Below are positions 1,549-54,645 of a DNA stretch of 64,000 bases, piece by piece. Each line of letters opens with the position of its first letter. Positions within the stretch are counted from its first letter, which is position 1. The stretch spans positions 60,574,001 through 60,638,000 of the forward strand of contig NC_043010.1 in NCBI RefSeq assembly GCF_006345805.1. Reading direction: 5' to 3'. This stretch comes from Octopus sinensis. Lineage: Eukaryota. A model generated the notes under the pieces. That model had not been told where the DNA came from and made no database searches. It saw only the letters and a list, made by a program, of their open reading frames with translations. Made by a program: the position numbers and the translations under genes.

Positions 1549-1590
1549 AAATTTCTCCTGCTGAAATGTGATGAAGAATTCCAGACATGA
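1549..1590 (+). promoter_or_regulatory. Conserved splice acceptor plus 38-nt leader preceding the Pcdh ATG (present in all nine copies)
   Basis: Pyrimidine tract + TAG, then exactly 38 nt to the ATG in every copy (exon starts 1549, 9529, 15772, 22574, 31832, 40873, 48801, 54713, 63623). Similarity between copies drops just upstream of the AG. Confidence 0.8.
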
Positions 1591-4500
1591 CAGCATATAT
1601 TGGTCTACTGTGTCTTCTACATTTACTGATCACCCTTGTACTGTCCATAGATATTACATACCATGTCAAGGAAGAAGACAGACCTCACACCTATATTGGA
1701 GACATTGCTGTTGACTCCAACTTATCACACCCTCTCACACATCAACAACACACTCTCATTACATTTACACAACTACAAAGGACAGTCGAGAGTGGTTCTC
1801 ACTTATTTAATGTCACCAACTCAGGAAAACTATACACTACTCAAACACTGGACGCTGAGTCTCTGTGTACCTACAACAAGGAATGTTCCAGAATAGTTAA
1901 AGTAGCTGTGAGAAAAGGACAAACCTTTATGAAAATCCTTAAAATAAAAATATTGATACAGGACATCAATGACCATTCTCCAGAATTTCCACAGAATGAA
2001 GTTGAAATTGCATTTTCTGAGAGAGACAGTAAAGGAACTAGAATATCTCTTCTAAACGCAATTGATAAAGATATTTCAATAAGAAATTCCCAACTTAAAT
2101 ATATGATTGAAAAAAGCAAGAGTGAACCATTTTCTCTCTCTGTCACAAAACAGGATGGTATTTTCATACCTGAACTCATACTAGAAGAAACATTAGATAG
2201 GGAACTTCAAGACTCATATATTTTAGCAGTTCAAGCTAAAGATGGAGGAAACCCTCCCAAAACAACTACACTCAAGGTACACATATCTGTAACAGATGTC
2301 AATGATAACACACCTGTATTTTCCCAGAAAGTCTACAATATCTCTATAAATAATTCACATCAAAGACATTTACCAATTCTTACTTTAAAAGCCACAGATA
2401 AAGATTCTGGACTCAATGGAAAGATTTCTTATCATTTCAACCATAAAACATCTCAAAATATACAGAAATATTTTGTATTAAATAAGAAAACTGGAGATTT
2501 ATTTTTAGATGATAAATTTCAATTTACTAAAAAGCAATCTTATAAATTGTTTATTGAAGCAAGGGATGGAGGACAGTCACCCAAAAAATCTGTTACCAGA
2601 GTTCAGCTTCATGTAATTAATAATGAGAATAATGCTCCATTGATAAATATAGATTTTGTATCTCCTTTATCAGAGAGTTCAGCAGCTGTTTCGGAAGCAA
2701 GTAAAATTGGTAGTTTTATAGCTTATGTTATGGTCACTGACACTGATAGTGGACCTAATGGTGAGGTTATCTGTGATTTAAAACATGATAAATTTAAACT
2801 TGCCAAAATTGATTCTAAAGAATATAAAATGATTGTTAAGGGCCATCTTGACAGAGAAATAAGGGACCACTATAAAGTATCTATTGTGTGTCATGACATG
2901 GGGTCACCTCAACTAGAAAGTAAAAAATATTTCTCTGTCAAAGTAACTGATGTCAATGATGTAGAACCACATTTTACCAAAGAGACATTCCAATTCCTCA
3001 CTTATGAGAACCAGAAAGTTGACTTCCCTATTGGCTTCATCAATGCTACAGACCCTGATCTTGGAGATGGAGGCCAACTTACATATTCTATCATCAATGA
3101 TAACAACAATGATAACATTCCTTTCCAACTGACAAAATATGGATTCATTTCTACATCACAACCAATAGATCGAGAAATGAAAGACATCTATAAGTTCCAG
3201 GTTTTAGTGAAAGATAATGGAACACCTTCTCTCAATGACACTGCCAATATTGTTATTGAGATTCTAGATAAAAATGATAATGCTCCGTATTTTACGTTTC
3301 CTAATAATGACCCTACAATCTCGATGTCCACTACCATCCACACAGTAAGAAGGACATCACAATTCTGAGAGCATCTGACAAAGACACTGGAAACAATGCT
3401 TTCCTCACATATGGAATACTGAGATCCAATGATAAAAACCTGTTTACAGTGAACTCACACACTGGTGTGTTATCTTTCTCTCGCACAGTTTACCAAAATG
3501 ATGCAGGAACATATGAGCTGCAGTTTATAGTGAAAGACGGTGGTACTCCAGTTCAATCAGCAACAACTGCTATCATACTAACACTGTTTGTTAGTAATGA
3601 TACAACTCCAATGTTGACTGCTGTGCCATTCCAGTCTGGTCACGACCTGAATATGACTTGGGTAATTATCATTGTAGCAGCAGCTGTAATACTATCTGTG
3701 GCTATTGTAGTGTCCATAACACTGTGTGTTTTCAGATGTATTAATCACACAAATAACTCACCCACAACAGCAGAGAATCCCAACTTTCTCTCTCAGACTG
3801 AGATGAGACAATTACTGTATCAGACTAACAATCCTGTTGCAATAACGAGAAATGCAGAAGAGATATTTAACCGAAATCTTCAGACAATAAAATCTAAAAG
3901 TCAGTTTTTTCTGGAGATGGAACAGACACCAGATGAGTGGAAATTCTCAACAACACAAAGGAGACTTCCACCTGTGCCTCAGGTAAATATTATTTTAATT
4001 GATTTTTCGGAAATGATATATCACAGTTGTGGTTATAACAGTTATGTTCTAGTTTGTATATTTTTTCCTTTTCTTTCTAGAAATGTAAAAGCTTTCCTAT
4101 CAGTTTACACCTTTCAGAATTAGTAGAATTATTTCATTTAACAACTAAACTTGTTTCTCTAATTCTTTTATACAAATAAATTATTGAATATTAATAATTC
4201 TGATGGTCTGATTGTATTACCCTTCCTTGTGTCTTACCTGGGGCATTCTAGAATATAAATGCAAAAGTTTCTTCTTTTTAGCCTAATGATTCACCCTGCT
4301 TTGTTTTCTAATCCACAGAGATGTGATTCAATCCATAGTCAAGGACGTCGCACCAGTTCCATCATGTCTTACAACAGTGACACCTTAACATCCCAAAAGG
4401 ACAGAGAAGCTAGCAAGAGTAATGGCAAGACTAAACCATATGATGAGATACCTGCAGAACCAGGTAACTTTTATCAAAACATAACATATAAATGTAATTG

Positions 4501-4707
4501 CCTTTATTACTGTAGGACAATATATAATGTTATGCTTAGTGTAATATAAGATCAATGTTTCTATCTTTATATATTGGAGTTGTTATATTGAAATGTAATT
4601 TGTGTGTGTGTATTTGATATTTTACAGAATATACCAATGACAATCCAGTGGCAGCCACAATACTAAAGGGACAACAAATACAAGATACGTATCTACAGCC
4701 AACATAG
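1587..4707 (+). CDS. Pcdh: Protocadherin copy A (6 EC + TM + tail); one 1-nt frameshift near 3314
   Basis: join(1587..3982,4319..4463,4628..4707). Signal peptide, EC1 C-x5-C motif ([12 protein letters not shown]), DxNDxxP linkers, DRE and DxD motifs, [33 protein letters not shown] vs CCCTTAC in intact copies splits the ORF (1587..3368 and 3449..4123). Confidence 0.88.
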
Positions 4708-8520: not shown

Positions 8521-9566
8521 TGGGAAGAGGATTACCATTCACAAAATGAGGTGTGTAGAGATAAAGTTGGGAGAATTACTCAAGGGAGATAACTCTCGTT
8601 ACGTATTTCTAGATGGCCCTTTGCTGTCCAAAATGATTGCTAATTGTAGTATTTTATATATAAAAAGGTGAAAGAAAAACAAACAGTGCTTCAGTTCTGT
8701 GTTTGTGCATATGCATACATTTATATGTATGAATAGGACAGTGTGCAGCGAATGCGGTTTTCTATACTTTGTCACAATCTGCTTCCTTCCTTTTTAAGTG
8801 TTTCTGTTTATATGTGTGTGTGTATAAATGCACATGTCTATAATTCTATTTTCTATGTATCTTTCTAAGTAAACATACACAAACAGATATATATCAGTCA
8901 AATACATAAGAATATTTTACACAAACACAAACACAAACTTTCACATTCCTCTCTTTTACATGCAGATACATATACACACACAGTGTTGAAGCGCTGCTTG
9001 ATTTTTGTTTCACTGTTGACCTTTCACCATTCCACTTCCATCGGTGGATCACCCTTTCCTTTCTCATTCCTATGTTGTGACAGATAAATATACAAGAGTA
9101 TTATTATAGTAGAAGATACACAATGCTCTCTTTGCCTCTTCCTTTTTCTCTCTCATTGCTATTACTTTCTCTCACTCTCCCTCAGTCATGGCTATTACTT
9201 TCACTACTTCTCCTTCACTGAATTACTATTTTGGCTCCTCTCTCTTCACCATTCATGCGTACTGCATGATTTTGGACAAATATATATATATATATATATG
9301 TATACAAATATATATATATATATATATGTGTATACAAATATATACAAACAATATGCTCATTATTATATTTGGAGATTATCTTGTAGATTATCAGACATGA
9401 GAAGACTATTCAATTGGGACTAATGAAACATTTTTACAAATAAACATAGAAGTGTCACAGTCGTTTTTATAAATATAATTTGGTTTACATTCTACATAAG
9501 CTTTAAATATCTTTGCTGTCTTTTGTAGAAATTTCTCCTGCTAAAGTGTGATGAAGAATTCCAGAC

Positions 9567-12500
9567 ATGACAGCATATATTGGTCTACTGTGTCTTCTAC
9601 ATTTACTGATCACCCTTGTACTGTCCATAGATATTACATACCATGTCAAGGAAGAAGACAGACCTCACACCTATATTGGAGACATTGCTGTTGACTCCAA
9701 CTTATCACACCCTCTCACACATCAACAACACACTCTCATTACATTTACACAACTACAAAGGACAGTCGAGAGTGGGTCTCACTTATTTAATGTCACCAAC
9801 TCAGGAAAACTATACACTACTCAAACACTGGATGCTGAGTCTCTGTGTACATACAACAAGGAATGTTCCAGAATAGTTAAAGTCGCAGTGAGGAAAGAAG
9901 AAACATTTATGAAAATTTTAAGGATAAAAATATTGATAGAAGACATCAATGACCATTCACCAGAATTTCCACAGAATGAAGTTGAGATTGAATTTTCTGA
10001 AAGAGACAGAAAAGGGGAAATGGTCTCCCTTCTAAATGCCATTGATCAGGATATTTCAGTCAAAAATTCTCAAATTACATATATAATTAAGAAAAGTAAA
10101 AGAGAACCATTTTCTCTCTCACTCACAAAACACAAAGGTATTTTCACACCTGAAATAATTCTAGAAGACAGATTAGACAGGGAAGTAAAAGACTCATATA
10201 TGTTGACCCTAGAAGCTAAAGATGGAGGAAACCCTCCCAAAACAGCTACACTCAAGGTACACATATCAGTAATAGATGTCAATGATAACATACCTGTATT
10301 TTCACAGGAAGTATACAACATCTCTATAATTAATTCACATCAAAGACATTTACCAATTCTTACTTTAAAGGCCACAGATCAAGATTCTGGACAAAATGGA
10401 AAGATATCTTTTCACTTCAACCATAAAACGTCTCGAAATATTCAGAAATATTTTGCATTAAATGAGAAGTCTGGAGATCTATTTTTACGTGATAATTTTC
10501 ATTTCAGTAAAAAGCAATCTTATAAATTATTTGTAGAAGCAAGAGATGGAGGGAAGCCACCAAAAAAGACTGTTGCAGCAGTTCAAATTAACATAATTAA
10601 CAACAAAAATACTGCTCCATTGATAAATATTGATTTTGTATCTCCTTTATCAGAGAGTTCTGCAGCTGTTTCGGAAGCAAGTAAAATTGGTAGTTTTATA
10701 GCTTATGTTATGGTCACTGACACTGATAGTGGACCTAATGGTGAGGTTATCTGTGATTTAAAACATGATAAATTTAAACTTGCCAAAATAGATTCTAAAG
10801 AATATAAAATGATTGTTAAGGGCCCTCTTGACAGAGAAATGAGGGACCACTATAAAGTATCTATTGTGTGTCATGACATGGGGTCACCTCAACTAGAAAG
10901 TAAAAAATATTTCTCTGTCAAAGTAACTGATGTCAATGATGTAGAACCACATTTTACCAAAGAGACATTCCAATTCCTCACCTATGAAAACCAGAAAGTT
11001 GACTTCCCTATTGGCTTCATCAATGCTACAGACCCGGATCTTGGAGATGGAGGCCAACTTACATATTCTATCATCAATGATAACAACAATGATAACATTC
11101 CTTTCCAACTGACAAAATATGGATTCATTTCTACATCACAATCAATAGATCGAGAAATGAAAGACATCTATAAGTTCAAGGTTTTAGTGAAAGATAATGG
11201 AACACCTTCTCTCAATGACACTACCAATATTGTTATTGAGATTCTAGATAAAAATGATAATGCTCCGTATTTTACGTTTCCTAATAATGACCCTTACAAT
11301 CTAGATGTCCACTACCATCCACACAGTAAGAAGGACATCACAATTCTGAGAGCATCTGACAAAGACACTGGAAACAATGCTTTCCTCACATATGGAATAC
11401 TGAGATCCAATGATAAAAACCTGTTTACAGTGAACTCACACACTGGTGTGTTATCTTTCTCTCGCACAGTTTACCAAAATGATGCAGGAACATATGAGCT
11501 GCAGTTTATAGTGAAAGACGGTGGTACTCCAGTTCAATCAGTGACAACTGCTATCATACTAACACTGTTTGTTAGTAATGATACATCTCCAATGTTGACT
11601 GCTGTGCCATTCCAGTCTGGTCACGACCTGAATATGACTTGGGTAATTATCATTGTAGCAGCAGCTGTAATACTATCTGTGGCTATTGTAGTGTCCATAA
11701 CACTGTGTGTTTTCAGATGTATTAATCACACAAATAACTCACCCACAACAGCAGAGAATCCCAACTTTCTCTCTCAGACTGAGATGAGACAATTACTGTA
11801 TCAGACTAACAATCCTGTTGCAATAACGAGAAATGCAGAAGAGATATTTAACCGAAATCTTCAGACAATAAAATCTAAAAGTCAGTTTTTTCTGGAGATG
11901 GAACAGACACCAGATGAGTGGAAATTCTCAACAACCCAAAGAAGACTTCCACCTGTACCTCAGGTGAATATTATTTTACATCTCTTATATCCTTTTGATT
12001 ATAAATACAAAAGTATTTAATCAATTATTGATGTGCATTCAAATATTTCTTTCAAATATCTATTTCAGATTCTCATGTGTATGAAATGTTTCATTCCTTT
12101 GTGACATTCTGAATTAATTGTTCTTTGGTGTCCTAGTGATAGCAAAATACAATATTCATTATCTAAATAGAATATGTTTTATATGAGAACTGTTTTATTA
12201 GGAGTCATCTGAACTTATATTGATATAAGATTCATTTTTCTATAATCGACAGAGATGTGATTCAATCCATAGTCAAGAACGTCGCACCAGTTCCATTATG
12301 TCTTACAACAGTGACACCTTAACATCCCAAAAGGACAGAGAAGCTAGCAAGAGTAATGGCAAGACTAAACCATATGATGAGATACCTGCAGAACCAGGTA
12401 ACTTTTATCAAAACATAACATATAAATGTAATTGCCTTTATTACTGTCGGACAATATATAATGTTATGCTTAGTGTAATATAAGATCAATGATTCTATCT

Positions 12501-12641
12501 TTATATATTGGAGTTGTTATACTGAAATGTAATTTGTGTTTGTATATTTGATATTTTGCAGAATATACCAATGACAATCCAGTTGCAGCCACAATACTAA
12601 AGGGACAACAAATACAAGATACCTATCTACAGCCAACATAG
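9567..12641 (+). CDS. Pcdh: Protocadherin copy B, intact, 873 aa predicted
   Basis: join(9567..11963,12253..12397,12562..12641). The 799-codon open exon ends PPVPQ|GT (phase 0). Exon 2 is 145 nt (phase 1 out); exon 3 ends YLQPT*. Confidence 0.93.
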
Positions 12642-15809: not shown

Positions 15810-18800
15810 ATGACAGCATATATTGGTCTACTGTGTCTTCTACATTTACTGATCACCCTTGCACTGTCCACAGATATTACATACCATGTCAATGAAGAAG
15901 GCAGACCTCACACCTATATAGGAGACATTGCTGTTGACTCTAACTTATCACACCCTCTCACACATCAACAACACACTCTCGTTACATTTACACAACTACA
16001 AAGGGCAGTCGATAGTGGTTCTCACTTATTTAACGTCACCAACTCAGGAAAACTATACACTACTCAAACACTGGATGCTGAGTCTCTGTGTACATACAAC
16101 AAGGAATGTTCCAGAATAGTTAAAGTAGCAGTGAGGAAAGGAAAAACTTTTATGAAGATTCTAAAAATTAAAATATTAATAGAAGACATCAATGACCATT
16201 CTCCAGAATTTCCACAGAATGAAGTTGAGATTGAATTTTCTGAGAAAGAGAGAAAAGGGGAAATGGTCTCCCTTCTAAATGCCATTGATCAGGATATTTC
16301 AGTCAAAAATTCTCAAATTACATATATGATTAAGAAAAGTAAAAGAGAACCATTTTCACTTTCTGTCACAAAACATGATGGTATTTTTATACCTAAACTC
16401 ATTCTAGAAGACAGATTAGACAGGGAAGTAAAAGATTCATATATGTTGATCTTGGAAGCTAAAGATGGAGGGAATCCTCCCAAAACAGCTACACTCAAGG
16501 TACACATAACTGTGACAGATGTCAATGATAATACACCTGTATTTTCACAGAAACTCTACAACATTTCTGTAAGCAATTCACATCAAAGACACTTACCAAT
16601 TCTTACTTTAAAAGCCACAGATCAAGATTCTGAGGATAATGGGAAAATTTCTTATCATTTCAACCATAAAACGTCTCGAAATGTCCAGAAATATTTTGTG
16701 TTAGATAAGAAAACTGGAGATTTATTTTTACATGACAAATTTCATTTTAGTAAAAAACAATCTTATAAATTATTTATTGAAGCAATGGATGGAGGTAAGC
16801 CACCAAAAAAGTCTGTTGCAGCAGTTCAGATTCAAATAATTAACAACAGAAATAATGTACCCATGATTAATATAGATTTTGTATCTCCTTTATCAGAGAG
16901 CTCAGCAACAGTTTCAGAAGACAGTGAAGTAGATAGTTTTATAGCTTATGTTATGGTCACTGACACTGATAGTGGACCTAATGGTGAGGTTATCTGTGAT
17001 TTAAAACATGATAAGTTTAAACTTGCTAAAATAGATTCTAAAGAGTATAAAATGGTTATTAAAGGTCATCTTGACAGAGAAATAAGGGACCACTATAAAG
17101 TATCTATTGTGTGTCATGACATGGGGTCACCTCAACTAGAAAGTAAAAAATATTTCTCTGTCAAAGTAACTGATGTCAATGATGTAGAACCACATTTTAC
17201 CAAAGAGACTTTCCAATTCCTCACCTATGAAAACCAGAAAGTTGACTTCCCTATTGGCTTCATCAATGCTACAGACCCTGATCTTGGAGATGGAGGCCAA
17301 CTTACATATTCTATCATCAATGATAACAACAATGATAACATTCCTTTCCAACTGACAAAATATGGATTCATTTCTACATCACAATCAATAGATCGAGAAA
17401 TGAAAGACATCTATAAGTTCAAGGTTTTAGTGAAAGATAATGGAACACCTTCTCTCAATGACACTGCCAATATTGTATTGAGATTCTAGATAAAAATGAC
17501 AATGCTCCGTATTTTACGTTTCCTAATAATGACCCTTACAATCTCTTTCCTCAATATGGAATACTGAGATCCAATGATAAAAACCTGTTTACAGTGAACT
17601 CACCCACTGGTGTGTTATCTTTCTCTCGCACAGTTTTACCAAAATGATGCAGGAACATATGAGCTGCAGTTTATAGTGAAAGACGGGTGGTACTCCAGTC
17701 AATCAGCAACAACTCTGCTATCATACTAACACTGTTTGTTAGTAATGATACATCTCCAATGTTGACTGCTGTGCCATTCCAGTCTGGTCACGACCTGAAT
17801 GACTGGGTAATTATCATTGTAGCAGTCAGCTGTAATACTATCTGTGGCTATTGTAGTGTCCATAACACTGTGTGTTTTCAGATGTATTAATCACACAAAA
17901 CTCACCCACAACAGCAGAGAATCCCAACTTTCTCTCTCAGACTGAGATGAGACAATTACTGTATCAGACTAACATCCTGTTGCAATAACGAGAAATGCAG
18001 AAGAGATATTTAACCGAAATCTTCAGACAATAAAATCTAAAGTCAGTTTTTTCTGGGATGGAACAGACACCAGATGAGTGGAAATCTCAACAACAACACA
18101 AAGGAGACTTCCACCTGTGCCTCAGGTAAATATTATTTTACATCTCTGATATCCTTTTGATTATAAATACAAAAGTATTTAATCAATTATTGATGTGCAT
18201 TCAAATATTTCTTTCAAATATCTATTTCAGATTCTCATGTGTATGAAACGTTTCGTTCCTTTGGTTAAAATTTCTGGCTTTTCTGTGACATTCTGAATTA
18301 ATTGTTCTTTGTTGTCCTAGTGATAGCAAAACACAATATTCATTATCTAAATAGAATACACTTTATATAAGAAATGTTTTATTAGGAGTGATCTAAACTT
18401 GTATTGATATCAGATTCCTTTTTCTATAATCAACAGAGATGTGATTCAATCCATAGTCAAGAACGTCGCACCAGTTCCATCATGTCTTACAACAGTGACA
18501 CCTTAACATCCCAAAAGGACAGAGAAGCTAGCAAGAGTAATGGCAAGACTAAACCATATGATGAGATACCTGCAGAACCAGGTAACTTTTACCGAAACAT
18601 AACATATAAATGTAATTGCCTTTATTACTGTAGGACAATATATAATGTTATGCTTAGTGTAATATAAGATCAATGTTTCTATCTTTATATATTGGAGTTG
18701 TTATATTGAAATGTAATTTGTGTTTGTATATTTGATATTTTGCAGAATATACCAATGACAATCCAGTTGCATCCACAATACTAAAGGGACAACAAATACA

Positions 18801-18825
18801 AGATACCTATCTACAACCAACATAG
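15810..18825 (+). pseudogene. Pcdh: Protocadherin copy C; ~77-nt deletion in EC6 plus many 1-nt indels (pseudogene or assembly error)
   Basis: join(15810..18125,18437..18581,18746..18825). Open for 559 codons, then a frameshift near 17475 and a deletion at ~17544 (ACAATCT joined to CTTTCC). Family identity is certain; pseudogene status is not. Confidence 0.6.
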
Positions 18826-22611: not shown

Positions 22612-25600
22612 ATGACACCATATATTGGTCTACTGTGTCTTCTACCTTTACTGATCACCCTTGTACTGTCCATAGATATTGCATACCATGTCAAGGAAGA
22701 AGACAGACCTCACACCTATATAGGAGACATTGCTGTTGACTCCAACTTATCACATCCTCTCACGCATCAACAACACACTCTCATTACATTTACACAACTA
22801 CAAAGGACAGTCGAGAGTGGTTCTCACTTATTTAATGTCACCAACTCAGGAAAACTATACACTACTCAAACACTGGATGCTGAGTCTCTCTGTACATACA
22901 ACAAGGAATGTTACAGAACTGTGAAGGTGGCAGTGAGGAAAGGAAAAACGTTTATGAAGATTCTAAGGATAAAAATATTAATAGAAGACATCAATGACCA
23001 TTCTCCAGAGTTTCCACAGAATGAAGTTGAAATTGAATTTCTCGAAAGCCAATTTAAAGGTACTAAAATCTCACTTTTAAATGCCATTGATCAAGATATT
23101 TCAATAAAGAATTCTCAAATTACATATATGCTAAAAAAAAGTAAAAGAGAACCATTTTCTCTCTCAGTCACAAAACAGGATGGTATTTTTATACCTGAAC
23201 TGACTTTAGCAGATAAATTAGACAGGGAACTAAAATATTCATATATGTTGACACTGGAAGCTAAAGATGGAGGAAACCCTGCCAAAACAGCTACACTCAA
23301 GGTACACATATCTGTAACAGATGTCAATGATAACACACCTGTATTTTCACAGAAACTCTACAACATCACTATAAGTAATTCACATCAAAGACATTTACCA
23401 ATTCTTACTTTAAAAGCCACAGATCGAGATTCTGGAGACAATGGAAAGATTTCTTATCATTTCAACCATAAAACATCTCAAAATGTCCAGAAATATTTTG
23501 TATTAGATAAGAAAACTGGAGATTTATTTTTACATGATAATTTTCATTTCAGTAAAAGGCAATCTTATAAATTATTCATTGAAGCGCAGGATGGCGGCAA
23601 CCCTCCTCTAAAGACAGTAGCTAGAGTTCACATTTATGTGATTAATAATAGGAATGCTGCTCCATTGATAAACATAGATTTTGTATCTCCTTTATCAAAG
23701 AGCTCAGCAGCAGTTTCAGAAGACAGTGAAGTAGATAGTTTTATAGCTTATGTTATGGTCACTGACAATGATAGTGGACCTAATGGTGAGGTTATCTGTG
23801 ATTTAAAACATGATAAGTTTAAACTTGCCAAAATAGATTCTAAAGAGTATAAAATGATTGTTAAGGGCCATCTTGACAGAAATAAGGGACCACTATAAAG
23901 TATCTATTGTGTGTCATGACATGGGGTCACCTCAACTAGAAAGTAAAAAATATTTCTCTGTCAAAGTAACTGATGTCAATGATGTAGAACCACATTTTAC
24001 CAAAGAGACATTCCAATTCCTCACCTATGAAAACCAGAAAGTTGACTTCCCTATTGGCTTCATCAATGCTACAGACCCTGATCTTGGAGATGGAGGCCAA
24101 CTTACATATTCTATCATCAATGATAACAACAATGATAACATTCCTTTCCACTGACAAAATATGGATTTATTTCTACACACAACCATATAGATCGAGAAAT
24201 GAAAGACATCTATAAGTTCAAGGTTTTAGTGAAAGATAATGGAACACCTTCTCTCAATGACACTGCCAATATTGTTATTGAGATTCTAGATAAAATGACA
24301 ATGCTCCGTATTTTACGTTTCCTAATAATGACCCTTACAATCTCGATGTCCACTACCATCCACACAGTAAGAAGGACATCACAATTCTGAGAGCATCTGA
24401 CAAAGACACTGGAAACAATGCTTTCCTCACATATGGAATACTGAGATCCAATGATAAAAACCTGTTTACAGTGAACTCACACACTGGTGTGTTTATCTTT
24501 CTCTCGCACAGTTTACCAAAATGATGCAGGAACATATGAGCTGCAGTTTATAGTGAAAGACGGTGGTACTCCAGTTCAATCAGCAACAACTGCTATCATA
24601 CTAACACTGTTTGTTAGTAATGATACATCTCCAATGTTGACTGCTGTGCCATTCCAGTCTGGTCACGACCTGAATATGGACTTGGGTAATTATCATTGTA
24701 GCAGCAGCTGTAATACTATCTGTGGCTATTGTAGTGTCCATAACACTGTGTGTTTTCAGATGTATTAATCACACAAATAACTCACCCACAACAGCAGAGA
24801 ATCCCAACTTTCTCTCTCAGACTGAGATGAGACAATTACTGTATCAGACTAACAATCCTGTTGCAATAACGAGAAATGCAGAAGAGATATTTAACCGAAA
24901 TCTTCAGACAATAAAATCTAAAAGTCAGTTTTTTCTGGAGATGGAACAGACACCAGATGAGTGGAAATTCTCAACAACACAAAGGAGACTTCCACCTGTG
25001 CCTCAGGTAAATACTATTTTACATCTCTGATATCCTTTTGATTATAAATACAAAAGTATTTAATCAATTATTGATGTGCATTCAAATATTTCTTTCAAAT
25101 ATCTATTTCAGATTCTCATGTGTATGGAACGTTTCGTTTCTTTGGTTAAAATTTCTGGCTTTTCTGTGACATTCTGAATTAATTGTTCAGATATTTTCGG
25201 TTTGAATGGCAGTTTTTTCTAGCGGTGTCATATGAAATTGTCACCCATAATTATGACCCTAGTATCGATCTATTGCATTTCAATCTATTTTAGGGTTAGG
25301 GGTGGGGGAAGGGTATCTTCTTTTCTTCACAAATGTAAATAAACCCAATCTGTTTCTTAAACGAGGGACATATTCATACGGCACAGAATGTTGTTTACCT
25401 TAATGGACGTCAGTGATTGGTTGAAATTGCAGAAATTGAAGAAAAAAACAAAAAATACCTTACAAACTGTAGAATTTTCTCAATAAAGCCAAGAGAAAAA
25501 GATGTTTTATAAACACTCTCTACCAGTATACGAAGTTTAACATTTTTTAGTTACCTAGAAATTATGATAAAAACTGCCGTTCAAACCGAAAAGATCCAAT

Positions 25601-26125
25601 TGTTCTTTAATGTCTTTGTGATAGCAAAGCACAATATTCATTATCTAAATGGAATACACTTTATATAAGAACTGTTTTATTAGGAGTGATCTAAACTTGT
25701 ATTGATATAAGATTCCTCTTTCTATAATCCACAGAGATGTGATTCAATCCATAGTCAAGGACGTCGTACCAGTTCCATCATGTCTTACAACAGTGACACC
25801 TTAACATCCCAAAAGGACAGAGAAGCTAGCAAGAGTAATGGCAAGACTAAACCATATGATGAGATACCTGCAGAACCAGGTAACTTTTATCAAAACATAA
25901 CATATAAATGTAATTGCCTTTATTACTGTAGGACAATATATAATGTTATGCTTAGTGTAATATAAGATCAATGTTTCTATCTTTATATATTGGAGTTGTT
26001 ATATTGAAATGTAATTTGTGTGTTTGTATATTTGATATTTTGCAGAATATACCAATGACAATCCAGTGGCAGCCACAATACTAAAGGGACAACAAATACA
26101 AGATACCTATCTACAGCCAACATAG
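22612..26125 (+). CDS. Pcdh: Protocadherin copy D; several small frameshifts after ~23880
   Basis: join(22612..25006,25735..25879,26046..26125). Open for ~425 codons; the remainder matches intact copies apart from 1-2 nt indels. Confidence 0.8.
25189..25597. mobile_element. MITE with ~28-bp TIRs and 8-bp TSD, in intron 1 of copy D
   Basis: TIRs AGATATTTTCGGTTTGAATGGCAGTTTT / AAAACTGCCGTTCAAACCGAAAAGATCC. TSD AATTGTTC at 25181-25188 and 25598-25605. The empty site is visible in introns of B and C. Confidence 0.85.
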
Positions 26126-29065: not shown

Positions 29066-30400
29066 TGCACAATAATATTAAACAGCTAGATCACTCCCTC
29101 CTGGAATTGAAGGAGAGCATTCAGCCAGCAATTATGGACTCTCATTTGGTGATTTCCACTTACCAGGTTTTCTCAGTACAATCCTGACATCTTCAATAGA
29201 AACCCCTTCATATATCCATTCTATATTATGCTCAGTATCTCTGACTTGCTAGTGAATCCATGTTCTTCCCAGATTAATTTCTAAAACTTTTGTATTTCTT
29301 CCTCGGTGGATGTGGTTTTAATAGTTGTATTAACTTTTGCAATTTTCTTTCACAGTTTATAGAATTGTTTTGTAACAAACTGTTTTCCTTGAAGATGTTT
29401 GACCATTTTTCAGGCCTCTTTTATACATCTTGCTTTTGTTTGAATCATTTGCTTGATTTTGTTCCCAAATTGCTTCATCAATTTCATTTGACCTTCTTAT
29501 GCCATATTTTCTTTCCACTTTCTTAGCTTTTGGTACCTTAACATTTTTTTTTGCTCTTTATATTCTTTAGCATTTCAATATCGGATCTAAGTACATTAAT
29601 TTTATTTCTAATTCTCCCTTGCCATGATGGTTTCCTGTTCGTCTGTTCAGTCTTTCTATTTATTTGAATCCCACAAAATCCAGTGGTCATTGAAGTTGCA
29701 GCATTGAGGAGATTATTCAGTGAGATGGATTTTATGAATGCATATTCCTTACTTATGATTCTACCATATTTTGTTGCAATTCTCATGGAGACCATTGTGA
29801 TCTCACATTTCAGTGTTTCACATTCATACACTCTGACAGAACTTTTGTCCTGAGATTATCATATTCAGTCTCTTACCACTCCCAGTGTAATCAATTTCAT
29901 TTACATCAGCCCCAGTGGTAAATTCTTGAGATACCTCTTTTGGGGTGTTTTGCACTATAATTTGTTTTCTCATTTGTATGGCCTTAGGCCTCAATATCTA
30001 TTTGAATTTGTTTGATATTTATGTCAGTCAACAGCTTATTCTTTATGATGGTCCTGCAAACATTAGCTGATTTCCTGCTATCTGTATTTTATCTGTTGAT
30101 ATGATTTTTTTCTTTCTTCAGTCTAACTTTGTTTTGTATTCAGTCTACCTAACGGAAAATACATTCTAGAATGGGCAGGTTTTCTTCCTTTGTGCATCTA
30201 GTTTTATAACATGTTGATGGTATGCACGAAGGGGCCATTGTCTTAAGGTATCTCTCTAAAAAAGCAATCATGTTGCGTGTTTTGGAAAGAGATCAACCCA
30301 TTAGCAATCTCGTCCACTTTAGATTGGTTTGACTCTTAGAAACGTGTTCTTTTCTACTACTAAGACCAATACAGGATGTGTTATCTTTTGTAGACATTTT
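29066..30400 (-). mobile_element. Decayed R4/Dong-like LINE, region upstream of RT
   Basis: Minus peptides RKPSWQGRIRNKINVLRSDIEML and KQMIQTKAR...KQFYK resemble the pre-RT region of R4-clade ORFs; multiple stops. Confidence 0.5.
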
Positions 30401-30539
30401 CTTTGTACTTCAATAATCATCATCATCATCATCATCATCATCAACAACAACATTATTGCTATTAAGAACATGGAGAGCTGGCAAAAACATTAGCACTCTG
30501 AGCATATTACTATGTGGCATTTTTTCCTGCTTTAAGTTA

Positions 30540-30662
30540 GGGTTCAAATAGCACCAAGGTTGGCATTGCCTTCCATCCTTTTGGGGAAAATAAAATAAGT
30601 ACTGGCTGAGCAATCAGCTTACACCTCGCTGAAATTCCTGGCCTCATACCAAAAATTGAAAC
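30540..30662 (+). mobile_element. SINE fragment (6823 family)
   Basis: GGTTCAAATAGCACCAAGGTTGGCATTGCCTTCCATCCTTTTGGGG. Confidence 0.45.
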
Positions 30663-30869
30663 CATTATTATAATTATTATCATCATTATCATTATTATTA
30701 TTATTGCATATGGCTTTAAAATAGAGTTTCTGTTATCAGTCACAGTGTTGCAACAAGCAATTTCAATATAATTCAAGATATTTAATGTCCCATTTCAGTA
30801 TATCAGTAAATATTAATTTTTAACAAAGCCATTCAGAAATTATCAACATTTCAAAGGACCTCACTACTC

Positions 30870-31655
30870 TTCTTCAGCTATTCTCCATCTCCATCTCCAA
30901 ATACTTGCTCACTGCTACCCCAGGGTTTTACCACTCACTGATCCCTTTCCCTGAAACTCGGCTTCTTTGGCAATGTCCTGCCACTTATATTATGACCTTC
31001 GACCCTCAAGGGTATACCCTGGTACTCGCCACCATCTATATCTCTCTTCTTTTACTCAACCATTCCATTTATATCATGATCCCTGTCCCTGTGAGTATAC
31101 CTGGCACTTTGGTGCCACCATCTCTATCCTGCTGCCTCCCACTCTCTCTCTCTCCTTCTCCTGCTCTTTCCTCAGGTTGTGTAACAACGTATCTCCTTTA
31201 CAGCAGCACACCTATTTCTGTCCTCATTTCTGATCTCTCTCCCCCACCCCTGGCCAAGTAAGCTTGTACTTCATCTACAGCAAGACACCTATTTCTGTAT
31301 CTCTGTCTCACTATCACTTTTCATCATCTGAGAAAAGATCACCTCCTCCAATGCACCCTCCTCTCTCAAAATATTTTTGTCTTGCAGGTTACTCAGTGAC
31401 CCTGTTAGTGTAGGTGCCACTTAAAAAGCATCCAGTCCAAACAGTAAAGTGGTTGGTATTTCGAAGGGCATCCAGCTGTAAAGACCTTGCGAAAACTGAC
31501 CTTGCCTGTGCTTGTGCCATGTAAAGACCACTCTGCTGGGTGGTTGGTGTTAGGAAGGGCATCCAGCTATAAAAACTTTGCTTAAGCAGATTTCAGCTCC
31601 TATCTAACCATTCCACCATGCCAGCCTGGAATGCAGACATTAAATGGTGCTGATA
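30870..31655 (+). mobile_element. RTE-related interspersed repeat
   Basis: Pyrimidine-rich body ending in a duplicated GGAAGGGCATCCAGCT motif and CCATGCCAGCCTGGAATGCAGACATTAAATGGTG. Confidence 0.55.
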
Positions 31656-31869: not shown

Positions 31870-34800
31870 ATGACACCATATATTGGTCTACTGTGTCTTC
31901 TACATTTACTGATCACCCTTGTACTGTCCATAGATATTACATACCATGTCAAGGAAGAAGACAGACCTCACACCTATATAGGAGACATTGCTGTTGACTC
32001 CAACTTATCACACCCTCTCACACATCAACAACACACTCTCATTACATTACACACTACAAAGGACAGTCGAGAGTGGGTTCTCACTTATTTAATGTCACCA
32101 ACTCAGGAAAACTCTATACACTACTCAAACACTGGATGCTGAGTCTCTGTGTACATACAACAAGGAATGTTCCAGAACAGTTAAAGTCGCAGTGAGGAAA
32201 GGAACAACTTTTATGAAAATTTTAAGGATAAAAATATTAATAGATGACATCAATGATTATTCCCCAGAATTTCCACAGAATGAAGTTGAAATTGCATTTT
32301 CTGAGACAGACAGTAAAGGAACTAGAATATCTCTTCCAAATGCAATTGATAAAGATATTTCAATAAAAAATTCTCAAATTACGTATACAATTAAGAAAAG
32401 TAAGAGAGAACCATTTTCTCTCTCTGTTACAAAACACAAAGGTATTTTCACACCTGAAATAATTCTGGAAGACAAATTAGACAGGGAACTCAAAGATTCA
32501 TATATGTTGACCTTGGAAGCTAAAGATAGAGGGAACCCTCCCAAAACAGCTACACTGAAGATACACATATCTGTAACAGATGTTAATGATAACATACCTG
32601 TATTTTCACAGGAAGTCTACAACATCACTATAAATAGTTCACATCAAAGACATTTACCATTCCTTACTTTAAAAGCCACAGATCAAGATTCTGGACAAAA
32701 TGGAAAGATTTCTTTTCATTTCAACCATAAAACGTCTCGAACTGTCCAGAAATATTTTGTATTAGATAAGAAAACTGGAGATCTATTTTTACATGATAAT
32801 TTTCATTTTAGTAAAAAGCAGTCTTATAAATTATTTGTAGAAGCAAGAGATGGAGGGAAGCCACCAAAAAAACTGTTGCCACTGTTCAAATTCACATAAT
32901 TAACAACAAAAATACTGCTCCATTGATAAATATAGATTTTGTATCTCCTTTATCAGAGAGTTCAGCAGCAGTTTCAGAATCAAGTAAAATTGGTAGTTTT
33001 ATAGCTTATGTTATGGTCACTGACACTGATAGTGGACCTAATGGTGAGGTTATCTGTGATTTAAAACATGATAAATTTAAACTTGCCAAAATAGATTCTA
33101 AAGAATATAAAATGATTGTTAAGGGCCATCTTGACAGAGAAATAAGGGACCACTATAAAGTATCTATTGTGTGTCATGACATGGGGTCACCTCAACTAGA
33201 AAGTAAAAATATTTCTCTGTCAAAGTAACTGATGTCAATGATGTAGAACCACATTTTACCAAGAGACATTCCAATTCCTCACCTATGAAAACCAGAAAGT
33301 TGACTTCCCTATTGGCTTCAATCAATGCTACAGACCCTGATCTTGGAGATGGAGGCCAACTTACATATTCTATCATCAATGATAACAACAATGATAACAT
33401 TCCTTTCCAACTGACAAAATATGGATTTATTTCTACATCACAATCAATAGATCGAGAAATGAAAGACATCTATAAGTTCAAGGTTTTAGTGAAAGATAAT
33501 GGCACCTTCTCTCAATGACACTGCCAATATTGTTATTGAGATTCTAGATAAAAATGATAATGCTCCGTATTTTACGTTTCCTAATAATGACCCTTACAAT
33601 CTAGATGTCCACTACCATCCACACAGTAAGAAGGACATCACAATTCTGAGAGCATCTGACAAAGACACTGGAAACAATGCTTTCCCTCACATATGGAATA
33701 CTGAGATCCAATGATAAAAACCTGTTTACAGTGAACTCACACACTGGTGTGTTATCTTTCTCTCGCACAGTTTACCAAATGATGCAGGAACATATGAGCT
33801 GCAGTTTATAGTGAAAGACGGTGGTACTCCAGTTCAATCAGCACAACTGCTATCATACTAACACTGTTTGTTAGTAATGATACATCTCCAATGTTGACTG
33901 CTGTGCCATTCCAGTCTGGTCACGACCTGAATATGACTTGGGTAATTATCATTGTAGCAGCAGCTGTAATACTATCTGTGGCTATTGTAGTGTCCATAAC
34001 ACTGTGTGTTTTCAGATGTATTAATCACACAAATAACTCACCCACAACAGCAGAGAATCCCAACTTTCTCTCTCAGACTGAGATGAGACAATTACTGTAT
34101 CAGACTAACAATCCTGTTGCAATAACGAGAAATGCAGAAGAGATATTTAACCGAAATCTTCAGACAATAAAATCTAAAAGTCAGTTTTTCCTGGAGATGG
34201 AACAGACACCGGATGAATGGAAATTCTCAACAACACAGAGGAGACTTCCACCTGTGCCTCAGGTAAATGTATATTTTAAACATTCCTCTATTTTGATAGC
34301 AAATTTTTGGCATTCTTCAAAATATGTTTTAAGTTTGTAGTGACATTTACAGGTTCTGTCCCAATTCTTATATCTTCCCTATAAAAGACAGTGTCTTTTA
34401 CATAATTTTACATTTTTCAGAAGGAATAGATTTAAGATTTACATCCATATCATTAAACTAGTGTCTTTGTTTTGTTTATTCTGCCCTCTTAAATAATTCT
34501 TAACTTAGAAAATGTTTAATTATAATATTTCCAATTTTTAAAAGAGGAATTTTTTTTTTGTGTTTTGCCAGGAACATTCTAGAATACAAATAGAAATGCT
34601 TTTATTTAACATAATGTTTTGTTCTGTTTTCTAATCAACAGAGATGTGATTCAATCCATAGTCAAGATCGTCGTACCAGTTCCATCATGTCTTACAACAG
34701 TGACACCTTAACATCCCAAAAGGACAGAGAAGCTAGCAAGAGTAATGGTAAGACTAAACCATATGATGAGATACCTGCAGAACCAGGTAACTTTTACCGA

Positions 34801-35030
34801 AACATAACATATAAATGTAATTGCCTTTATTACTGTAGGACAATATATAATGTTATGCTTAGTGTAATACAAGATCAATGTTTCTATCTTTATATATTGG
34901 AGTTGTTATATTGAAATGTAATTTGTGTTTGTATATTTGATATTTTGCAGAATATACCAATGACAATCCAGTGGCAGCCACAATACTAAAGGGACAACAA
35001 ATACAAGATACCTATCTACAACCAACATAG
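31870..35030 (+). CDS. Pcdh: Protocadherin copy E; multiple 1-nt frameshifts
   Basis: join(31870..34262,34642..34786,34951..35030). All domains are present across shifted ORFs (31870, 32192, 32923, 33285, 33499, 33891). Confidence 0.78.
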
Positions 35031-36490: not shown

Positions 36491-38829
36491 CACACAAGAT
36501 ATTATATGTCTATGTATATATAATGCATATATATATATATATTTATAAGTAAATATATAGAGAAAGAAAAAGTATGAATTGCAGTATATTATATACATGA
36601 CATTAATGAAAAATAATTTAAATTTACTTATATAGTTCATTTTCTGACAGATGTATATATATATCTGTCAAAAAACATTGATTGATAGCCAATAAGACTG
36701 AGTGTTGGTAATGAATGTCAATATAGTTTATATCTGTTTTGTTTTAATAATTATACTGATTAAATCTTCAAGTTTCTATAGCTTTAATTAACTTTAACAG
36801 ATCTCTCCTCTAATATCTCTCTCTTTATATATATCCCGTTAAATATCCATTATACATTCCTTTGTATAATACACTATGAATATTTGTTAGTATTATTATT
36901 ATTGTTAAGGTGGTGATAAATATAATTTAGTGTAGATTTGCTATTTAAGCTATTTGTTGTGAGATATAAACTGATGATATTGTCATGTGTTGTTTAAATA
37001 TATTAACTTTGACAAGAGATGAATGTTAAGAATTGATCAGAAATAATATCATCTTCCTACAAGCTAACAGACATCACATTATTATAGGTCTTCTTTGCTA
37101 AATATAATGTAACAGAAACATTTTATGTTTACAAAATCTAAATAGTATATGCAAATAGGAATTAAATATCTACATATTTCATAAAGATGATTATACATAT
37201 TTTACCATTAACAACATTCATGCCAACATTTTTGTATCCATAAAAAATCTCATTGTAAAATATTTCTGCATATTTTTATAAACTGTTCTGCTTTGATATT
37301 AATCCCACTGCATTAGGTTTTAATCATTATTGTGTCAATATAATTTCAATATACTATGAAATATCAGTATAGTTTGAAGAGTAGTTTCACATAAAATATT
37401 CCTGGAAGATATTGGTTGATTATATGAAAGATATATCTTCAACCCAGAATATCATTTTTTGAATCTTTAGCTTTGTGAGTCCAAACTCTTTATTTCTCAA
37501 GATTATTACACATTGACTTTATTATGACTTTGATCCATTCCAGATAGGGTCCAGTCTATGATCCTAGGTATGTTTTCTATATCTCTCTAATCCCTAATGA
37601 TTGACACTTTTCCCTACCTAGCAGTTTTAAAGGGTCTTAATATTTCTCTCTAAAGACAATATATCATTCAATCTATCTATAAACTTTCACAGCAGGATGC
37701 CCTTCCAAATGCCAACCACCTCACTGTGTGGACTGGATGCTTTCTTACACTAACCACAAATCCTACTCTTTCCTCTTCAGAATTTCTGTCCTCAAGAATT
37801 CCCTTTTTTTTTTCCTGCTGCTATTAACTTTGTACTTTCCAAGAAAATTATTGACTGTATTGACCTCACTGATGTGAGAGGGCTTGCGAGACCCTTAAGT
37901 ACAGCCCTTTCCTCCACACTTAACCATTTTCAAGATAACTTTGACCGATCTGTTCTCAATACATGCATTCCAACTTTAAAAATCTATTTAAATTTTAAGG
38001 TTTCTCCTTTCATTCAATGAAGGCAATAATATTGTAAAGGTTAGTTATTATCAGTTGAATTGACCACACAAAGTGTGTAGGGCATCTTTTGTTGACTTCT
38101 GTTGAATGGAAAGACATATTTGATCCTTACAAAACAGGGATCAGAAGTAATAAACATTTTCCAGATGCTTTTATCTAGGCCGAAATAATGTCTTCACCAC
38201 TTAACCCTTTCTAACCTCTTCTACTTCACCAAAAGATAGAATAGAGATACAAGACCACCAACTAAATCTATTGTTCACAATGATATGTCTGTCTTTCTGG
38301 ATAGTTATAAAAGCAAGCACACCCCAAGCAAAAATCAGTTAATCACAGTCAGTGACAACTCACCGAGTTCAGTCGCATGATGACGACTCAATGACAACAA
38401 AGTCTGGCTGACCAGCTACAACCTTGGTCAGAGGGAGAAATGAAGTTTACTGTCAGCAACTGTGAGACAACACCCTACAACTCACACTAGCTCTAACTCT
38501 GTTCTCTTACAACATCAGTCTATCTCTCTCTGTAATTACAACTAAACAATGCACAGAACACATGTTTGCATGCTTTAGGATTTATCATAACCTGCCTGTC
38601 ACGGCAAGATATTGTAACGTAATGGTAAATAAATATTTCCTTAAAAACTTCATGCACTGTTCATCTTTCACATCCTACAGTATGCAATTATAACAACAAA
38701 TTTTTATTGTTACAACTACTGACATCGACATCATCATTATATTGTGTAACTAATCAATTTCTCCCACTACAAGTGGTGACCTCGACTCCTATTAAAAACT
38801 TTATCATCACAGGTACATAGGCAATACAG

Positions 38830-39050: not shown

Positions 39051-39708
39051 GAACACAGCTCTGATAACGGACAGTCAAGAATTATTGAAAAGATTGTAAG
39101 AAGCAACGAAAATTTTAAGAAAAAATATAAATGAGTGGAAATTGACCCTTTGAGTGTATTAATTAATAAGGCATTAAAACAGAATGAGTGTTCCCAGACT
39201 ACGAAATATGCTTTAACACACAAATTCGCATAAAGAATTTTGCAAACCAAGTAGAAAAATGAAACAAGAAAGTTGCAAGTTTATTCCAGGGAGGTAACTC
39301 TGCATATTTCTGGGAACGTAATTACGACGGAGTGTTCAGATATTTAATATTCGAAGTTGAAATTTTTCAATTTACCAAGATTAACCGTGAATATGGGAGG
39401 AAAACATTCCTTCAGGGAAAGATTGAGATTTGTTAAAAGTAAAATTTAATTAAAAAGCCTGAAATAAAGGAAAATACCTATCAAATTTTGTCTAACTTTT
39501 AGGGAAAAAAAGGAAAATGCATTATGAGAGTTGATGTGGTCTTATATCAAATTGTGAAAGCAACAGAGAATGCTTTAGCTATATTAGACCTTTTCATGTC
39601 AAAAAATCTCCTCAGTTGGCAAGATGAAGTGAGACACACAGACACACACTCTCTGTCTCTCTAAATGTAGTGGTCCTGAAAAGATCTAATAACAATCAAA
39701 CTTAATAC

Positions 39709-39982
39709 ATTGCTATATTTAAGAGATGAGGAATTATGTACCTTATTTACATTATTTACATTTGATGGATATTTGTCCTCATCTTGTTTATTAGCACAAC
39801 GTTTCCGCTGATATACCCTCCAGCTTTTATCAGGTGTCTTGGTGAAATTTTGAACTTGGGTTCTTATTCCTAAGGTATTTTTCCATATTATTATTATTAT
39901 TATTATATTATTATTATTATTATTATTATTATTTTGTTATTATTATTATCATTCAGGTCACTGCCTGTAATCGAACTATGCT
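39709..39982 (-). mobile_element. SINE-like element with (AAT)n and degenerate minimal hammerhead; head truncated
   Basis: Minus strand: GTTCGATTACAGGCAGTGACCTGAAT, (AAT)n, then GACAC-CTGATAA-AAGCTGGAGGGTATATCAGCG-GAAACGTT-GTGCT (39793-39838). Confidence 0.7.
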
Positions 39983-39992
39983 ATATGCCAGT

Positions 39993-40063
39993 GGGCATAT
40001 GGCGTAGTGGTTAAGAGCGTGGGCTACTAACCCCAACATTCCGAGTTTGATTCCAGGCTGTGA

Positions 40064-40101
<38 letters not shown>

Positions 40102-40213
40102 TAAATAATACCAACAACAACAACTTCGAAAAATACCTTAGGATTGAGAACCCCAAAAGTTCAAAATTTCCCCAAGACACCCGAGTTTTGATTCCAGGCT
40201 GTGACCTGAATAC

Positions 40214-40252
<39 letters not shown>

Positions 40253-40408
40253 CAACAACAACAACTTCGAAAAATACCTTAGGATTGAGAACCCCAAAAG
40301 TTCAAAATTTCCCCAAGACACCCGATGAAGGCTGGAGGGTATATCAGCTGAAACGTTGTGTTGACAACAAACAAGATGTAAATATCCATCAAATATAAAT
40401 AATGAACA
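39993..40408 (+). mobile_element. tRNA-headed SINE with (AAT)n, 140-bp internal tandem duplication and minimal hammerhead motif
   Basis: A box TGGCGTAGTGG, B-box-like GAGTTTGATTCC. Duplication 40041-40180/40181-40321. Hammerhead-like GACAC-CCGATGA-AGGCTG..CAGCT-GAAACGTT-GTGTT at 40317-40362. Confidence 0.75.
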
Positions 40409-40910
40409 ATCAATCTTATCAAGTACCTTCAAATCCAAAAATACTTCCATACAGCATTTTCTTATTTTCAAAATTTTCACTTCATCAAGTCCATTAAAAT
40501 TGTCTACATTAGAAATTGCTTTTAAATTTTAGACACCCTAAAATGAGGGATGGTGTTTCTGATGGTTTCATCAATAATCTGGGTTCATCACAGATTTCCA
40601 ACTCACATTATATTTGAGACATTACCATGTTTCAGAATAATAACCAGAAGTTTTTCTTTCTCTCGTAGTGCTCACATGGTAATGCACATTCTCAGAGCAT
40701 ATGAGTTTCTTTTTGTATCACTTCAGTTCTTCATTTTTGTTTCAGGTGGTGAGATGGGTAACTTTTTCATTACTTTTCACTCTGTTGGAAATAACATTTA
40801 CACCATAAATATTATAATTTTCTTTTATTTAATTATTCCATAGTCTTTACATATGTTTGTTGTCTTTTGTAGCAATTTCTCCTGCTAAAGTGTGATGAAG
40901 AATCCCAGAC

Positions 40911-43900: not shown

Positions 43901-44015
43901 ATGTAATTTGTGTTTGTATATTTGATATTTTGCAGAATATACCAATGACAATCCAGTTGCAGCCACAATACTAAAGGGACAACAAATACAAGATACCTAT
44001 CTACAGCCAACATAG
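40911..44015 (+). CDS. Pcdh: Protocadherin copy F, intact, 873 aa predicted
   Basis: join(40911..43307,43627..43771,43936..44015). 799-codon first coding exon with canonical GT-AG introns. Confidence 0.93.
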
Positions 44016-51800: not shown

Positions 51801-51946
51801 TATCTTTATATATTGGAGTTGTTATATTGAAATGTAATTTGTGTGTGTGTATTTGATATTTTGCAGAATATACCAATGACAATCCAGTGGCAGCCACAAT
51901 ACTAAAGGGACAACAAATACAAGATACCTATCTACAGCCAACATAG
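48839..51946 (+). CDS. Pcdh: Protocadherin copy G, intact, 874 aa predicted
   Basis: join(48839..51238,51558..51702,51867..51946). 800-codon first coding exon (one extra residue in EC2, KRRDG). Confidence 0.93.

Positions 51947-54542: not shown

Positions 54543-54645
<103 letters not shown>

Follow-up and report, generated by a model that had tools for sequence, protein, structure and literature searches.

The window analysed here, the whole of a 64,000-nucleotide (nt) stretch of Octopus sinensis DNA (CM016872.1:60,574,001-60,638,000, assembly GCA_006345805.1), holds an array of protocadherin genes, and the subject of this work is the history of their second and third extracellular cadherin (EC) repeats. 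Eight complete three-exon genes (A to H) and the start of a ninth (I) lie head to tail, all on the plus strand. The large exons were mapped with tblastn, and exons 2 and 3 with tblastn using the C-terminal tail of P0001. The large exon, which is 2397 nt long in gene F, codes for the signal peptide, all six cadherin repeats, the transmembrane segment and the first part of the tail, and it terminates at a GT donor following PPVPQ. Six extracellular cadherin repeats, as expected for a protocadherin of the delta-2 or clustered-like type, were found both with Pfam, which gives five Cadherin stretches and an N-terminal Cadherin_2 for gene F, and by sequence matches to PDB entries, the best of which for this gene are the EC1-6 protocadherins 6vg1, 6e6b and 6vg4, matched end to end. 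Read off the translation, the hydrophobic run directly after EC6 would be the single transmembrane segment, followed by a tail that reaches into exons 2 and 3. These two short exons encode the last 74 residues, and each of the eight genes has its own pair behind it, so that there are no shared constant exons in the octopus array. The nearest database proteins are annotated as "protocadherin beta-15-like" and come from Octopus sinensis, O. vulgaris and Argonauta hians. Window positions 53661-64000 match a public O. sinensis locus with 100% identity, which fixes the chromosomal coordinates given above.

Two regimes are seen along the large exon. Variation is confined to exon positions 301-1140 (residues 101-380), which run from the end of EC1 through EC2 and EC3 into the first residues of EC4. 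At these positions the copies differ pairwise by 0.08-0.26 on average, compared to 0.004-0.05 elsewhere, and the edges are sharp. Synonymous divergence (dS) is 0.43 in this island, 0.057 in the upstream part and 0.038 in the downstream part; at synonymous sites the island is about 10 times older than the homogenised parts. The gene copies are old; concerted evolution has homogenised the flanks, but the 840-nt island has escaped it. The octopus array therefore shows the regional homogenisation sparing EC2-EC3 that is a trait of the vertebrate clusters. The ratio of nonsynonymous to synonymous divergence (dN/dS) is about 0.22 in the island and 0.22-0.29 across all three exon parts, which argues against bulk positive selection in the island. 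At the start of EC4 (exon positions of about 1105-1125, e.g., 16914-16934 in C and 42015-42035 in F) there is a two-state cassette, SEASKIGSF or SEDSEVDSF. In both species, the form that a paralogue has is unrelated to its EC2-EC3 type; the EDSEVD form occurs in C, D and G, and the retrieved proteins split 19 versus 22 between the two.

Inside the island the history of the genes is reticulate. A first-pass annotation, made from the letters of the window, had claimed that no single tree fits EC2-EC3, and among the eight window genes 53% of the informative site pairs are indeed incompatible. The pairwise homoplasy index (PHI) test for recombination, run on EC2-EC3, gave a z of about -6 (p <= 0.0002) for the window genes and -8.6 (p <= 0.0002) for 12 O. 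vulgaris genes alone. In the window, incompatibility is 0.27 for sites less than 10 nt apart and reaches a plateau of about 0.55 beyond 50 nt; over both arrays it goes from 0.27-0.33 at less than 10 nt to 0.55-0.58 beyond 50-100 nt. This growth of incompatibility with site distance, expected of interlocus conversion, is found in two independent arrays. Along the island, the nearest-neighbour paralogue switches every few tens of nt. In a 3SEQ-like test, B came out as a mosaic, with C-like and E-like parts (p = 1e-4; 0.018 after correction for 168 triplets). EC2-EC3 trees of this array are unusable as gene histories.

The shared tracts on which the annotation had based its claim were checked at the DNA level (Table 1). 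The identities of B with C over 77 nt and of B with E over 38 nt are both exact and maximal. We used a Sawyer-type test, in which the lengths of runs of concordant variable sites are evaluated by permutation, on 28 gene pairs. The B-C run comprises 35 consecutive concordant variable sites (p < 2e-4) and the G-H run 25 (p = 8e-4), and both survive correction for the 28 pairs; for B-C and G-H, the identity tracts go beyond the overall similarity of the pair, as interlocus conversion would predict. The B-E run is real but falls short of significance by itself, as no other pair is as similar overall as B and E. The C tract is conserved in the O. vulgaris counterpart vC, and C is therefore the likely source type. 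E does match A at the start of EC2, where the two differ at 2 of 51 nt and other pairs at a median of 15, and A and D share KQDGIFIPEL, differing at 2 of 30 nt (median 7). For G and H, the sharing amounts to 49 nt of exact identity at the end of EC3. This tract probably predates the species split, as the matching O. vulgaris genes (P0125 and P0123) encode the same 17-residue peptide with few differences there. The motif that had been listed for D and F (GGNPPLK.VARVHIYVINN) is the same 19-residue peptide in both genes, but 10 of its 57 nt differ. It is thus no recent copy but an old shared motif, conserved in both species.

The comparison with O. vulgaris was made with chromosome OX597827.1 (GCA_951406725.2), an independent assembly obtained with another pipeline. 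The O. vulgaris assembly is based on Oxford Nanopore Technologies reads, and the two species split about 2.5 million years ago (PMC10700109). The window is collinear with the O. vulgaris chromosome at about 96% identity, intergenic DNA included. Extending the arrays gave 17 O. sinensis and 15 O. vulgaris copies (32 in total) and 14 positional pairs. The island distances of these pairs are 0.001, 0.008, 0.008, 0.008, 0.011, 0.020, 0.032, 0.042, 0.067, 0.076, 0.090, 0.095, 0.098 and 0.111, and the rest of the exon differs by 0.003-0.016 in the same pairs. The island distances are strongly over-dispersed (index 28; chi-square p of about 1e-70, and 1e-51 without E, F and G). Differences between the two species cluster in patches, and at most of the differing sites both states occur in other paralogues.

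Several exchanges can be followed individually, and they date from after speciation. The flanks of B are orthologous to those of vB, yet 9.8% of the island differs. Where the two diverge, the states of vB are C-specific and those of B are the states of E, vX and u3, the last being a paralogue about 37 kb upstream, outside the window. B equals u3 exactly at exon positions 438-518 (81 nt) and 557-596 (40 nt), and over the 159 nt of the larger tract there are 4 mismatches. This larger tract holds both cassettes described above for B. The first-pass annotation had taken them separately from C and from E, and they are better read as a single tract of about 160 nt common to B and u3. The O. vulgaris counterpart of u3 is without the first part of the tract (19 differences at positions 435-530), and vB is without the second. 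A further upstream paralogue, u4, and its O. vulgaris counterpart vU4 are separated by 13 differences in a stretch of 61 nt, and in 13 of 13 u4 has the D/vD state. The D type itself is conserved in the two species, and u4 is a clean case of transfer from D. In gene E, the A-type segment at the start of EC2 is not carried by vX. By these comparisons, some of the EC2-EC3 exchanges postdate the species split and fall within about the last 2.5 million years.

The u3 locus shows three versions of one 50-100 nt cassette, namely, those of the chromosome copy, of the unplaced contig VCDQ01010532.1 and of O. vulgaris. The island of this contig equals u3 over 180 nt bar two sites, yet it has a wholly different EC2 cassette of about 50-90 nt. 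Its upstream flank is orthologous to that of u3, with about 25 substitutions compared to the chromosome and about 45 compared to O. vulgaris (counted by eye). The contig probably represents an alternative haplotype of u4-u3, a region that lies shortly before the window. If it is indeed the other haplotype of the sequenced animal, cassette variants segregate within the species. The gene model P0133 was considered as evidence for a different EC3 in u3 and was rejected; it spans 14.8 kb, takes in the exon-1 copies of both u3 and u2 and so seems to combine pieces of the two genes, and DNA was used instead. The upstream flank of u3 is orthologous in the three haplotypes, and the donors C/vC and D/vD are conserved between the species. 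Recipients have thus kept their flanks while donors remained unchanged, as is characteristic of conversion. Patches that are pasted without moving the flanks indicate non-crossover gene conversion.

Not all of the mosaic has this origin. We mapped unique intergenic tiles to the O. vulgaris units, which places the flanks of each gene. E has a 3' flank that corresponds to the one of v8 and a 5' flank that is unmatched in the O. vulgaris loci. The 5' flank of F corresponds to that of v9 and its 3' flank to that of v7, and G has the 5' flank of v8 and the 3' part and 3' flank of v9. The E-F-G segment (window positions 29600-54000) is rearranged compared to O. vulgaris, which has one extra gene. 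With flanks that correspond to different O. vulgaris units, E, F and G are hybrid genes produced by unequal crossing-over within gene bodies, and we excluded them from the orthologue-based argument. The assignment of vX, v7 and v8 as positional orthologues of E, F and G, which order and spacing had suggested, is ruled out by the flank mapping. Judged by these placements, part of the mosaic comes from intragenic unequal crossing-over, a process that was missing from the first-pass annotation.

We consider it likely that the array evolves by ectopic recombination in two regimes, with short-tract exchange shuffling EC2-EC3. In the first, long-tract homogenisation would keep the first 300 nt, the part from early EC4 to the cytoplasmic tail, and exons 2 and 3 near-identical. 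In the second, which would apply inside the 840-nt island, only short tracts of about 40-160 nt would succeed. By non-crossover conversion, such tracts would paste the segment of one paralogue into another with the flanks staying put, and occasional unequal crossovers within gene bodies would add hybrid genes. The EC2-EC3 regions would then be different combinations drawn from a limited stock of segment types. Long tracts may be kept out by selection for distinct specificities, by a divergence of 12-16% that limits heteroduplex formation, or by both, as the two are not exclusive. The new combinations may alter homophilic recognition. The claim that germline short-tract conversion makes new combinations is supported by the recombination statistics of two independent assemblies, the lineage-specific patches and the near-allelic contig, but it does not extend to cassettes such as those of G-H and D-F, which are old. 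The differences that we see are germline differences between assemblies. Ordinary meiotic or mitotic germline conversion is the best-supported process, and nothing in the window suggests a programmed or somatic mechanism. A more speculative possibility, which we put forward tentatively, is that populations segregate many EC2-EC3 combinations per locus, so that individuals differ in their adhesion repertoire, and that long-tract exclusion together with short-tract tolerance has been selected for exploring specificities, a solution convergent with that of the vertebrate clusters but mechanistically distinct from it.

Duplication and unequal crossing-over might have produced the pattern on their own, with no short non-crossover conversion. 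This fits the flanks of E, F and G, which derive from different O. vulgaris units, and the difference of one gene between the arrays, and in the mosaic painting many segments extend over hundreds of nt and differ by 5-6% from their best donor. However, B, u3 and u4 have orthologous flanks or an orthologous backbone and nevertheless contain internal patches of 40-160 nt with orthologous sequence on both sides. Such patches need a double exchange, which amounts to conversion. Compatibility is also lost within about 50 nt, and with one breakpoint per gene it would reach much further. Crossing-over as the sole process is therefore unlikely.

We regard it as very improbable that the mosaics are an assembly artefact, i.e., chimeric consensus or mis-polishing among tandem copies that are about 94% identical and were assembled from noisy long reads. 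Compared to their intact O. vulgaris orthologues, five genes have between 1 and 16 indels (A 1, C 16, D 7, E 12 and H 3; those of C include a 77-nt deletion relative to intact vC), the published gene models merge neighbouring genes, and the O. sinensis assembly has many scaffolds and gaps. But the indels lie almost wholly in the paralogue-identical part of the exon and outside the island, those of C without exception in the homogenised part, and the genes with the most divergent islands (B, F and G) have none. Short-read polishing fails in this paralogue-identical part, and the indels therefore have the look of consensus errors and not of pseudogenes. Five positional pairs agree to 0.1-1.1% over the island, so both consensus sequences are accurate there. 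The 77-nt tract is exact in the independently assembled vC and PHI is equally significant in the O. vulgaris array alone, and the mosaic is therefore not an artefact of one assembly. Convergent or parallel substitution at interface residues, mimicking shared cassettes, is scarcely credible. In its favour, D and F have the same motif with different DNA as noted, limited peptide types recur over about 40 proteins, and even clean orthologue pairs differ mostly by states found in other paralogues. But identity is exact over 77, 81 and 49 nt, synonymous sites included, in a region with a dS of 0.43, the dN/dS reveals no replacement excess, the PHI permutation test is robust to site-specific rate or state bias, and among the cases examined only D-F differs at synonymous sites as much as unshared regions do.

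Some observations weigh against short-tract exchange between paralogues as the full account. Incompatibility already stands at 27-33% for sites less than 10 nt apart, which means that recurrent mutation also contributes. The direction of transfer is deduced by parsimony from two species without an outgroup. Most of the large difference clusters in B, E, F and G could not be assigned to a single donor from the 32 copies sampled; they may reflect donors outside this sample, overlapping events or a lack of orthology. Both assemblies come from noisy long reads and are compared at the consensus level, and with about 40 indels in five genes the local quality of the O. sinensis copy is imperfect. The comparison of haplotypes does give a different cassette at the u3 locus, but the contig is probably, not certainly, an allele: the 25 or so substitutions, counted by eye, are spread over an alignment of about 1,290 nt, which makes the identity about 98%, and VCDQ01010532.1 lacks sequence that is inserted in the chromosome copy. 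That the shuffled segments may act as specificity determinants, or recognition codes, is suggested by analogy with vertebrate protocadherins only.

In vertebrates, regional gene conversion is known for the protocadherin (Pcdh) alpha, beta and gamma clusters (Noonan et al. 2004, as cited in PMC4978886 and PMC6339937), and also in the Pcdh clusters of fugu (PMC1852091) and Xenopus (PMC4978886). According to PMC4978886 and PMC1852091, EC2-EC3 have the highest dS and the phylogenetic signal there and are described as not or seldom converted. Specificity is encoded by the antiparallel EC2:EC3 interface (PMC5001838). Like the octopus array, the vertebrate clusters consist of tandem six-repeat units in the same orientation, with homogenised C-terminal ectodomains and cytoplasmic part (low dS) and the highest dS in EC2-EC3. 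There are three differences. Vertebrate clusters have variable first exons spliced to shared constant exons, whereas each octopus gene has its own exons 2 and 3; that cephalopod genes are without shared constant exons is stated too in PMC9068888. In octopus the N-terminal 100 residues of EC1 are homogenised as well. Finally, unlike in the vertebrate clusters, short-tract exchange within EC2-EC3 is statistically clear in octopus and occurred partly after the split of about 2.5 million years ago. The protocadherin expansions of cephalopods have been described before (Albertin et al. 2015, as cited in PMC6339937; Albertin et al. 2022, PMC9068888; Styfhals et al. 2019, PMC6339937), and homogenising gene conversion has been proposed generally for these genes (PMC9068888, PMC6339937). 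In the searchable cephalopod literature we found conversion mentioned in general terms, and no domain-resolved analysis, EC2-EC3 island, cassette exchange or cassette polymorphism. Relative to that literature, the domain-resolved picture for octopus and the re-patterning of EC2-EC3 by short tracts are new, and so are the cassette replacements, which took place after speciation and probably segregate.

Cephalopods and vertebrates expanded their protocadherins independently. A diverse EC2-EC3 island between homogenised flanks, as in vertebrates, is support at the sequence level for a convergent role in recognition, and it marks the island as the part of the protein that is relevant to the question of recognition in octopus. 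The textbook view that EC2-EC3 escape conversion has to be qualified, as the octopus island is entered and reshuffled by short tracts, which may be polymorphic. Such entry would be a concrete route to fast new adhesion specificities.

Diversifying interlocus gene conversion is known from the major histocompatibility complex (MHC) class I and II genes and from other tandem receptor arrays. As in octopus, short tracts recombine existing polymorphic segments of the binding region there, and other parts of the genes are homogenised. The MHC genes belong to another protein family and serve ligand or peptide binding, whereas homophilic neuronal adhesion is presumed for the octopus proteins. Also unlike MHC-type conversion, the octopus data hold no evidence for balancing or positive selection (dN/dS of about 0.22). 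The general theory of interlocus gene conversion is reviewed in PMC3924837.

Table 1. Protocadherin exons, shared tracts and indels, in window coordinates.
Feature	Position	Strand	Remarks
Gene A large exon (EC1-EC6, transmembrane, tail start)	1587-3982	+	Island ~1887-2726; distance to vA 0.032
Gene A exons 2 / 3	4319-4462 / 4627-4704	+	tblastn
Gene B large exon	9567-11963	+	Intact frame; island 9867-10706; 9.8% from vB
Gene B exons 2 / 3	12253-12396 / 12561-12638	+	tblastn
Gene C large exon	15810-18125	+	Island 16110-16949; distance to vC 0.008
Gene C exons 2 / 3	18437-18580 / 18745-18822	+	tblastn
Gene D large exon	22612-25006	+	Island 22912-23751; distance to vD 0.020
Gene D exons 2 / 3	25735-25878 / 26045-26122	+	tblastn
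Gene E large exon	31870-34262	+	Hybrid; 12 indels; island ~32171-33009
Gene E exons 2 / 3	34642-34785 / 34950-35027	+	tblastn
Gene F large exon	40911-43307	+	Intact; hybrid; island 41211-42050
Gene F exons 2 / 3	43627-43770 / 43935-44012	+	tblastn
Gene G large exon	48839-51238	+	Intact; hybrid; island ~49139-49981
Gene G exons 2 / 3	51558-51701 / 51866-51943	+	tblastn
Gene H large exon	54751-57147	+	3 single-base deletions; island ~55051-55891; distance to O. vulgaris v10 0.008
Gene H exons 2 / 3	57333-57475 / 57640-57717	+	tblastn
Gene I large exon, first 340 nt	63661-64000	+	Rest cut by window end; full-gene island distance to v11 0.008
77-nt tract in B, EC2 start	10008-10084	+	Peptide RKGEMVSLLNAIDQDISVKNSQITY; also exact in O. 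vulgaris vC and O. sinensis u3
77-nt tract in C	16251-16327	+	Kept in O. vulgaris vC
38-nt tract in B	10125-10162	+	Peptide TKHKGIFTPEII; absent from vB, which has C-like states at exon positions 549-589
38-nt tract in E	32429-32466	+	Motif present too in O. vulgaris vX and vU3
Larger B tract, exon positions 438-596	10004-10162	+	Shared with u3; holds both B cassettes; DNA comparison
A-type EC2-start segment (AFSE..SKGTRISL) in A	2010-2052	+	1 mismatch in 43 nt to E
A-type segment in E	32294-32336	+	Mosaic painting: E exon positions 374-495 match vA/A
49-nt tract, EC3 end, in G	49833-49881	+	Identical to H
49-nt tract in H	55743-55791	+	Identical to G
Indel, gene A	3314		1-nt deletion
Indels, gene C	17476-18089
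Indels, gene D	23878-24678
Indels, gene E	32047-33843
Indels, gene H	55101-56421

The public gene models at this locus often fuse two to four neighbours or seem to connect the beginning of a gene with the end of a different one (P0123, P0133, P0137, P0145 and P0148). For the intact genes B, F and G, database searches gave no exact protein match, and the exact product of the F open reading frame was not found in public assemblies. The current gene models of this array, and counts and orthology based on the annotation, are unreliable. Model P0138 has an extra C-terminal tail (YYTGTAAAAAVTQEHYY...), which may derive from the corresponding region 3' of gene I.

Upstream of the ATG, the similarity between paralogues starts abruptly, about 40-47 nt before the start codon, at a conserved polypyrimidine/TTTTGTAG motif (e.g., 40864-40871 and 9520-9527). 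As this motif resembles a 3' splice acceptor, one or more exons probably precede the large coding exon. A search with Rfam found no RNA families in the window. About 1.1 kb 3' of exon 3, genes F, G and H are followed by a 31-nt repeat (ACAGCAGCAGCAGTAACAC...), at 45113-45209, 52981-53055 and 58761-58835, respectively. Upstream of F, a tandem repeat at 40041-40325 consists of two copies of a 141-nt unit. The intergenic stretches 29601-31600, 38001-38800 and 39601-40400 are without counterpart in the O. vulgaris loci compared, and the base composition is strongly skewed at 28-32 kb and 46-48 kb. These unmatched or skewed stretches are probably insertions of repeats or mobile elements.

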